Below are positions 2,816-63,800 of a stretch of 64,000 bases of DNA, piece after piece. The DNA comes from Pocillopora damicornis. Taxonomy: Eukaryota. The stretch is from contig NW_020847128.1 in the NCBI RefSeq assembly GCF_003704095.1, positions 62,001-126,000 of the forward strand. Reading direction: 5' to 3'. Made by a program: the position numbers and the translations under genes. Position 1 is the stretch's first letter. Each line of letters starts with the position of its first letter. The notes under the pieces were generated by a model. It made no database searches. It was not told the origin of the DNA and saw nothing but the letters and a program-made list of their open reading frames with translations.

Positions 2816-2876
2816 ATGAACTTTCTGTGCTATCAGCTGTTGGTTGGAGGCCTTCTGTTAATTACAGCGAACGAAG
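2816..2876 (+). CDS. First coding exon: signal peptide [20 protein letters not shown](G)
   Basis: ATG at 2816, hydrophobic core, phase-1 donor G|GTAAGG matching all downstream exons. A polypyrimidine tract and AG at 2771-2772 suggest a further 5'-UTR exon upstream. Confidence 0.75.

Positions 2877-63800: not shown

Follow-up and report, generated by a model that had tools for sequence, protein, structure and literature searches.

Drosophila Dumpy carries more than 300 EGF modules, Ca-binding ones among them, together with a single ZP module near its C-terminus and a transmembrane (TM) anchor; it is encoded in many exons and anchors the epithelium or epidermis to the overlying cuticle under tension (PMC2930355). 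Caenorhabditis elegans FBN-1 combines a signal peptide, Ca-binding and non-Ca-binding EGFs, a ZP module with a furin site directly after it and a TM segment; this component of the apical matrix resists mechanical deformation of the embryonic epidermis and needs regulated splicing (PMC4395870). Here, we describe a locus in the coral Pocillopora damicornis for which these two proteins, and not fibrillin, are the closest known architectures. It lies on contig NW_020847128.1 of assembly GCF_003704095.1, of which we analyzed positions 62,001 to 126,000 of the forward strand (64,000 nt; hereafter, the window) as well as the sequence past the 3′ edge. All exons of this gene given below are on the + strand, and coordinates above 64000 continue the window numbering (position on the contig, C3763, minus 62000).

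A first-pass annotation of the window had proposed a lectin-tipped rod of more than 100 EGF modules and had called it a possibly undescribed tether, which is overstated in view of the giant precedents Dumpy (PMC2930355) and FBN-1 (PMC4395870). As read from the predicted exons, the precursor would be a type I membrane protein comprising a signal peptide, a 19-residue segment, a C-type lectin-like domain (CTLD), ∼108 EGFs, a VWA domain, two further EGFs, a ZP-N plus ZP-C module, a furin-type site and a TM helix. Counting all canonical exons, the predicted product would measure ∼5,170 amino acids (aa), and ∼85% of its EGFs would carry a Ca-binding motif. We are confident, short of certainty, that this is a single-copy coral gene of ∼71 kb, most of which is held by the window. 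That the product works as a giant polymerizing ZP-module apical matrix protein, on the model of uromodulin-type ZP proteins, Dumpy and FBN-1, is the mechanism we favor, with distinctly less assurance.

Domain order from the EGF array to the membrane anchor

Throughout, searches were made exon by exon. A six-cysteine pattern detected 104 EGF modules in the window, all of them on the + strand (− strand, 0), which, together with a Lectin_C match and a signal-peptide exon at the 5′ end, bears out the proposed CTLD-plus-rod layout. Extended 3′ of the window, the array gains only 5 kb more, reaching a total of 112 matches, the last of which ends at 69069. Nearly all modules (110/112) are single phase 1-1 exons with a polypyrimidine/AG acceptor and a GT donor (GC in one case), the acceptor sitting two bases 5′ of the D-x-D/N-E-C motif and the donor one base 3′ of the codon next to C6. 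A profile hidden Markov model (HMM) built from the array exons added one more intact EGF exon with seven cysteines (35701-35823) and ∼12 truncated, frameshifted or decayed EGF pseudo-exons. Counting only exons with both borders, 15886-63800 holds 101 of them (4,119 aa) and 15886-67271 holds 107 (4,365 aa), with a median array intron of 305 nt. The clear exons of the window, including the three 5′ exons described below, hence amount to 4,119 + 166 aa, and the figure of more than 4,300 aa given in the first-pass annotation is reached only if uncertain exons are counted.

Calcium-binding signatures run through the array. The N-terminal motif (D/N-x-D/N-E/Q before C1) is present in 95 of the 112 modules and the second motif of Ca-binding EGFs (cbEGFs), C-x-D/N-x4-F/Y-x-C-x-C, in 93, with 91 modules carrying both; a sample array exon matched Pfam EGF_CA with an E value of 4.6e-11, and EGF_3 was also found. 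The linker from C6 to the next C1 is five residues long (x-D-x-D/N-E) throughout the array, a spacing that matches the rod-forming cbEGF tandems of fibrillin. Between the array exons of the window, we found no Cys-rich module, no long open reading frame (ORF) and no Pfam match on spare ORFs, and an Rfam search of the window returned no RNA family.

Going 3′, the array can be divided into four blocks. Block A (15886-19596) consists of 11 single-EGF exons of phase 1-1, and block B with its tail (20224-48714) comprises 61 EGF modules, 60 of them with both borders. Block B is made mostly of 37-residue cbEGFs, among which short EGFs of 29 to 33 residues without the Ca motif are interspersed (13 in block B, two in block A). 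After the longest array intron (48715-51101; 2,387 nt), an atypical EGF exon (51102-51227) precedes block C, which runs through 54774 and has nine EGFs with spans of 34 to 36 residues in 390-bp units that are 85 to 91% identical. Block D (55148-64000) has 21 EGF exons in the window plus one further exon split by an assembly gap (58169-58268), with the consensus CS....PCD.NA.C.N..GSYSC.CK.GFTGDG..C; past the window edge, it continues with six EGF exons (64457-67271), the last of which is 67149-67271.

Beyond the window edge, the array comes to an end after 3.3 kb, and the remaining domains follow at 3.3 to 10 kb. The statement that the gene contains no other domain type holds inside the window but fails past its edge, where VWA and ZP domains appear. 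The VWA exon (67348-67890; phase 1-1; Pfam VWA, E 7.6e-16) is followed by two EGF exons (68517-68627 and 68947-69069), a ZP-N exon (71275-71554; Pfam ZP-N, E 3e-12) and three ZP-C exons (72179-72484, 72704-72827 and 73258-73420), with Pfam ZP-C matches on consecutive exons (E 4.6e-16 and 3.6e-07). The third of these carries a furin-type site, RNRHRR, and a hydrophobic patch, and the last exon (73973-74103) encodes a TM helix and a short basic tail, with the stop codon at 74104-74106 and an AATAAA ∼140 nt further on, at 74246. The order read from the sequence is RNRHRR, PVHITLLSHGPIWL, a 22-residue TM helix and the basic tail, cleavage being predicted only. Splice phases along the chain from VWA to the last exon run 1>1>1>2>2>0>1. 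Anthozoan ZP proteins with the same layout of ZP, cleavage site and TM segment have been described (PMC4890752), and by analogy the combination of ZP module, furin-type site and TM helix points to a polymerizing ZP matrix protein.

The individual 3′ domains have recognizable relatives. VWA, whose nearest Protein Data Bank (PDB) chain is mussel PTMP1, a byssus matrix VWA, lacks the DxSxS metal ion-dependent adhesion site (MIDAS) and reads FASLS instead, and this position was also non-DxSxS in all orthologs inspected. There are 28 orthologs of the VWA exon, at 32 to 99% identity, 26 of which are at least 56% identical. The nearest PDB chains of ZP-C are uromodulin and GP2 (E 7e-05) and that of ZP-N is betaglycan. 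Within the genome, the ZP-C exon has no close paralog; the nearest are 32 to 38% identical to this gene, 38% being the best among 25 ZP loci.

Given the long cbEGF tandem with fibrillin-like inter-domain spacing, a fibrillin/LTBP-like microfibril protein of the mesoglea, instead of an apical ZP polymer, has to be weighed; fibrillins are enriched in the adult sea-anemone mesoglea (PMC12549020). Rod-forming cbEGF tandems are indeed common to fibrillin-1 and the coral protein, but a scan of Cys-rich open frames outside the EGF exons found no TB/8-Cys module anywhere in the array, which sets it apart from fibrillin, as already stated in the first-pass annotation. Moreover, the ZP module, furin-type site and TM anchor present here are absent from fibrillins, and FBN-1, where the three also occur together, is apical (PMC4395870). 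We regard a mesogleal microfibril protein as highly improbable.

Likeness to Dumpy rests on architecture and may be convergent: the giant EGF array, C-terminal ZP module and TM anchor are all present, whereas the DPY modules of Dumpy, arranged in EGF-DPY-EGF triads, and its PIGSFEAST and proline-rich inserts are absent. The five residues between EGFs leave no room for DPY modules, so the coral protein falls outside the Dumpy family by the DPY definition; it also differs in having one exon per EGF and in its N-terminal CTLD and its VWA domain, neither of which is described for Dumpy. FBN-1, at 2,781 aa, has long Ser/Thr-rich regions and no described CTLD or VWA domain, whereas the coral protein would be nearly pure EGF and about twice as long. 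With uromodulin and GP2, it shares EGFs directly before the ZP module and a cleavage site plus hydrophobic patch before the membrane anchor. Uromodulin has three to four EGFs, a D8C domain and a glycosylphosphatidylinositol (GPI) anchor. The ORFs between the last EGF and ZP-N gave no Pfam match at all, D8C included, and with a TM helix in place of GPI and ∼110 EGFs, the protein is not uromodulin. CD93 and thrombomodulin likewise have an N-terminal non-sugar CTLD, then EGFs and a TM anchor, but six or fewer EGFs and no ZP or VWA domain. The coral skeletal "ZP domain-containing protein" (Acropora millepora G8HTB6; Acropora digitifera aug_v2a.07627) was considered and rejected by architecture. 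Found in coral skeleton proteomes (PMC7115838), this protein of ∼415 aa has a signal peptide, a Thr/Pro-rich stretch, a ZP domain and a TM segment (PMC4890752); it shares with our gene an anthozoan ZP followed by a basic cleavage site and TM segment (PMC4890752) but has no EGF, CTLD or VWA.

The CTLD and its transcripts

At the 5′ end, the first coding exon (2816-2876) starts with the ATG at 2816, encodes a 20-residue signal peptide and ends in phase 1 (G/gtaagg). In the sister-species gene model P0056, this N-terminus is joined to the next two exons. The first of them, a 19-codon exon of phase 1-1 (6832-6888), was termed a propeptide in the first-pass annotation; it contains RKAR, a putative cleavage site only. 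The second (7783-8163) encodes a long-form CTLD with six cysteines in a single exon, again of phase 1-1 (Pfam Lectin_C, E 1.8e-21). Together, the three exons account for 166 aa.

RNA evidence comes from contigs of four runs aligned to 7700-13699. In all four, contigs cover the CTLD exon (7780-8163), in X1, X2 and X7, from three studies, with a contig covering exactly 7780-8163, and so the gene is expressed in adult colony samples. Upstream, the contigs reach 126 to 189 nt beyond the CTLD exon, enough for exons 2816-2876 and 6832-6888, and the overhang uniquely matches 6856-6885 within the latter. Downstream, the overhang uniquely matches 15886-15913, the start of the first exon of block A (15886-16008), and one X2 contig extends 853 nt beyond the CTLD, about seven exons' worth. 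Splicing thus joins the CTLD donor at 8163 to 15886, and the lectin-like head and the proximal array share transcripts. For this part of the array, the possibility raised in the first-pass annotation that CTLD and EGFs belong to separate genes can be dismissed.

While the CTLD fold is well supported, the word "lectin" is less so. Sugar-binding CTLDs have EPN or QPD plus WND at Ca site 2. The coral domain has EPK at the EPN/QPD position and WEV at the WND position, as seen in alignments with its nearest PDB chains, the mannose-receptor family CTLDs of PLA2R, DEC-205 and the macrophage mannose receptor. Canonical Ca-dependent sugar binding is therefore unlikely, and judging from these residues, the domain more likely binds a protein or a noncanonical ligand than a sugar. 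CTLD exon orthologs in other corals are 69 to 97% identical.

Between the CTLD and block A lie four decaying exons (10112-13451) that CTLD transcripts skip: a linker-plus-EGF pseudo-exon with its donor at 10541 and an in-frame TGA at 10396; an intact EGF exon (11111-11233); a half-EGF exon of 46 nt that shifts the frame (12688-12733); and an exon starting at 13067. The intact one would have been the first EGF counted for the rod in the first-pass annotation, yet CTLD-containing transcripts leave it out. A second transcript form in the RNA contigs uses the joints 10541>11111, 11233>12688 and 12733>13067. At the equivalent position (L029), a distant relative has intact exons that combine a mucin-like linker with an EGF; compared with these, the broken exons of Pocillopora are dying ones. 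The second form could represent nonproductive splicing of dying exons or a small product with a single EGF; a short ORF from an ATG at 10478 would extend in frame to the EGF at 11111.

The intron sequence at 11700-12100 showed an RNA contig depth of 90 to 205 in three of the four runs (7 to 9 in X2), compared with 0 to 38 elsewhere, with many different contigs and loose ends. It adjoins a 380-bp segment (11345-11725) that the sister species lacks, and a 158-aa ORF within it had no Pfam match. The probable source is a transposon fragment or dispersed repeat that is transcribed.

Array integrity, related corals and the one-gene reading

A locus this repetitive invites the question of assembly error, and the published P. 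damicornis assembly has been described as probably under-assembled (PMC9646523). Three gaps (5557-5656, 47643-47652 and 56165-56264) are intronic. Another (34776-34945) has cost the EGF exon at 34953 its acceptor and initial codons. On either side of it lies a copy of the sole near-identical internal repeat (33913-34234 and 35260-35581; 99.1% identity), which makes the local exon count uncertain by one to three; judging from this identity, the exon pair 34043-34168 and 35390-35515 may be an assembly duplicate. The gap in block D (58169-58268) lies inside an EGF exon, leaving halves at 58117-58167 and 58271-58312 that may or may not share a frame. The remaining internal repeats are only 79 to 91% identical, with introns diverged beyond alignment, which argues that the array is old and real and no assembly artifact.

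The youngest internal duplications, a three-exon unit with a period of ∼907 bp duplicated at 81% identity with its introns (61401-63335; 61.4 to 63.3 kb) and a one-exon unit of ∼390 bp duplicated at 85 to 91% identity (51989-53066), show that the array grows by tandem duplication of exon blocks. Exon 54203-54318 has six cysteines and a good acceptor but no GT or GC donor; its sequence after C6, AGAG/ATATTCAC TGA, resembles a fused and then decayed start of the next "DI.." exon. Independently of the EGF units, a dispersed repeat of ∼210 bp occurs in four introns of the gene, with copies that are 83 to 88% identical at 5768-5980, 15429-15641, 20030-20167 and, past the window and inverted, L006:5976-6182 (add 64000 for window numbering). 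It is likely an element resembling a short interspersed element (SINE) or a miniature inverted-repeat transposable element (MITE).

Related corals provide an independent view of the locus. A gap-free contig of the sister species (GCA_942486045.1; L014) is collinear and ∼97% identical (96 to 98%) over the 15.5 kb (6500-22000) to which DNA alignment was limited; for the sister locus as a whole, the comparison consisted of a search for EGF patterns and of placing six short peptides. It lacks the segment corresponding to window 16784-18463 (at L014:24587-24592), and with it five in-frame EGF exons (16809-18323; 205 aa), a clean indel of an exon block. In a distant coral assembly (ERZ25071797), the VWA domain is 59% and the CTLD 69% identical. 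An 8.45-Mb contig of this assembly carries at least 53 same-strand EGF exons, then VWA, the same two EGFs, ZP-N and ZP-C, and the relative's CTLD is followed by EGF exons matching ours at 15886 and 16290 and then by a G protein-coupled receptor (GPCR) gene. Other corals, by sequence comparison, have retained both ends of the gene as well as the dense EGF array.

In the distant relative, at least five intronless 7tm_1 GPCR genes on both strands lie inside array introns (ctg30107: L028, L031, L032 and L034; ctg27829: L033); no GPCR genes were found within the array introns of Pocillopora. The start of the relative's array beside a GPCR cluster had at one point hinted at two genes, an idea we dropped once further EGF exons turned up upstream. 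There, on ctg30107, the GPCR genes are interspersed over >31 kb with four isolated same-strand EGF exons, of which three have polypyrimidine/AG and GT borders; the GPCR genes are therefore nested, and long introns are normal for this gene.

Since all EGF exons are symmetrical (phase 1-1), any subset of them keeps the frame, and the locus might instead be one gene whose exons serve as a pool of cassettes, with much shorter and variable products and the 5,000-aa form rarely or never made. Beyond the phase 1-1 design across the array, this would fit with the skipping of EGF exon 11111 in CTLD transcripts and the alternative joints; with the exon dropout seen in ∼12 decayed pseudo-exons and one donor-less exon; with the frame-preserving absence of five exons in the sister species; and with the alternative splicing of Dumpy (PMC2930355). 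However, six cysteines, the Ca motif and good splice sites have been retained in nearly all exons even though the introns can no longer be aligned, a contrast that speaks for selection on most of the exons; in addition, an RNA contig reads 853 nt beyond the CTLD, and dense arrays are also kept in the distant relative. We consider a pool of mostly short products unlikely.

Several observations weigh against a single gene expressed at full length. The RNA covers 7700-13699 only, no contig links the distal array to the VWA-ZP-TM end, and the contigs cannot tell which EGF exons are constitutive. In the sister species, the annotation (L014:10001-17076) holds only a 164-aa gene of signal peptide and CTLD, P0056, with an odd terminal exon, NECSWGQIISEY, which we read as a fragmentation of the giant gene. 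The distant relative's CTLD is on a different contig from its VWA-ZP end; the two contigs share no alignable DNA, and the upstream walk on ctg30107 reached no CTLD. Among the features described above, two gaps reach into exons, a donor is missing from one exon and one exon pair is possibly an assembly duplicate. Finally, neither the CTLD, which lacks the canonical sugar residues, nor the VWA domain, which lacks MIDAS, points to a particular ligand.

The split of the relative's ends between contigs and the separate CTLD model of the sister species would also suit two head-to-tail genes: blocks A and B would encode a secreted CTLD-EGF protein, blocks C and D an EGF-VWA-ZP-TM protein. Their boundary would fall in 48715-51101, the longest interval in the array and the only plausible place for it there, beyond the 7700-13699 covered by RNA contigs. 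Yet the exon before this interval (48592-48714) ends in a normal phase-1 donor, and exon 51102, with its strong phase-1 acceptor, requires another exon before it. The interval itself, in a stretch free of N from 47653 to 56164, shows neither a domain nor a long ORF, nor any signal-peptide-like first exon by a first-exon heuristic, which gave many chance candidates across the array and therefore cannot prove internal starts absent. In the relative, furthermore, the array does not start at block C; its same-strand EGF exons extend >31 kb further upstream. Two genes thus appear unlikely as well, slightly more so than the cassette pool.

Sequence collections added little in either direction. With the CTLD exon as query, a representative library gave no full-length ortholog, the matches being mostly multi-CTLD proteins of no relation to the gene and short exon-level calls; a word-index search with the VWA exon gave genomic exon calls only and no spliced forms; and a search with the ORF around exon 51102 had no match. 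Metagenome contigs from JGI contained 0 matches for the junction 48714/51102 and likewise 0 for the RNA-proven junction 8163/15886, which makes this collection uninformative.

Taken together, one gene is favored by the single strand, uniform phase and short introns of the exons, the lack of anything else between them, the CTLD-to-EGF splice, the single-copy ZP-C and the conservation in other corals. One recognized signal-peptide first exon stands at the 5′ end and a single ZP module, furin-type site, TM helix and stop at the 3′ end, and by phase arithmetic the canonical exons, all taken together, make up one open frame totaling 15,498 nt (5,166 codons; divisible by three).

A candidate apical matrix fiber

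How might such a protein work? Following uromodulin-type ZP proteins, the precursor would be delivered to the apical membrane, where cleavage at RNRHRR would free the external hydrophobic patch and allow ZP modules to polymerize head to tail into a filament. From this filament, each subunit would project a Ca-stiffened EGF rod ending in a CTLD. In seawater calcium, the cbEGF tandem should form a stiff rod, and at ∼3 nm per cbEGF it would be roughly 300 nm long, in agreement with the hundreds of nanometers envisaged in the first-pass annotation, provided that all exons are used. The outcome would be an apical extracellular matrix fiber or brush serving as a surface coat, a mucus scaffold or a tether between epithelium and substrate. 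The scheme builds on the exon anatomy, the domains, the splice from CTLD to EGF and the conservation at either end, all of which the data establish; we infer the continuity of the mRNA through the whole array, the cleavage, the polymerization, the tissue and the ligand.

Two candidate settings can be proposed by analogy. Pocillopora ZP-domain paralogs are mostly enriched in the oral epidermis (PMC13581030), and desmocytes use fibrils to hold tissue to the skeleton (PMC4890752); the oral epidermis and desmocytes may therefore be where the protein acts. As a more specific and quite tentative proposal, it could be a giant EGF-ZP fiber of the Dumpy class, homologous or convergent, with a recognition-type CTLD head, a VWA base and symmetrical one-EGF exons through which both the animal and evolution could tune its length exon by exon, the sister species already differing by five. 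It would tether the epithelium to what overlies it, be it the surface mucus or coat or the desmocyte fibrils that fix tissue to skeleton.

In the literature we searched, there was no paper on a protein composed of CTLD, ∼100 EGFs, VWA and ZP, nor on a cnidarian Dumpy-like protein. A full-length product, if made, would rank with the largest cnidarian proteins and, within that literature, would be the first giant EGF-ZP fiber found outside ecdysozoans. If true, the design of a Ca-stiffened EGF rod on a polymerizing ZP base would date back to, or have arisen independently in, the cnidarian lineage. On the practical side, with the sister-species annotation reducing the gene to a 164-aa "lectin," expression and proteome studies based on such models will miss it. 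The layout of one exon per EGF, combined with the five-exon difference from the sister species, offers a clean system for studying length change in repeat proteins. For coral biology, the gene would provide a concrete candidate for structures that are poorly understood: the apical surface coat, the mucus scaffold and the fibrils between tissue and skeleton.

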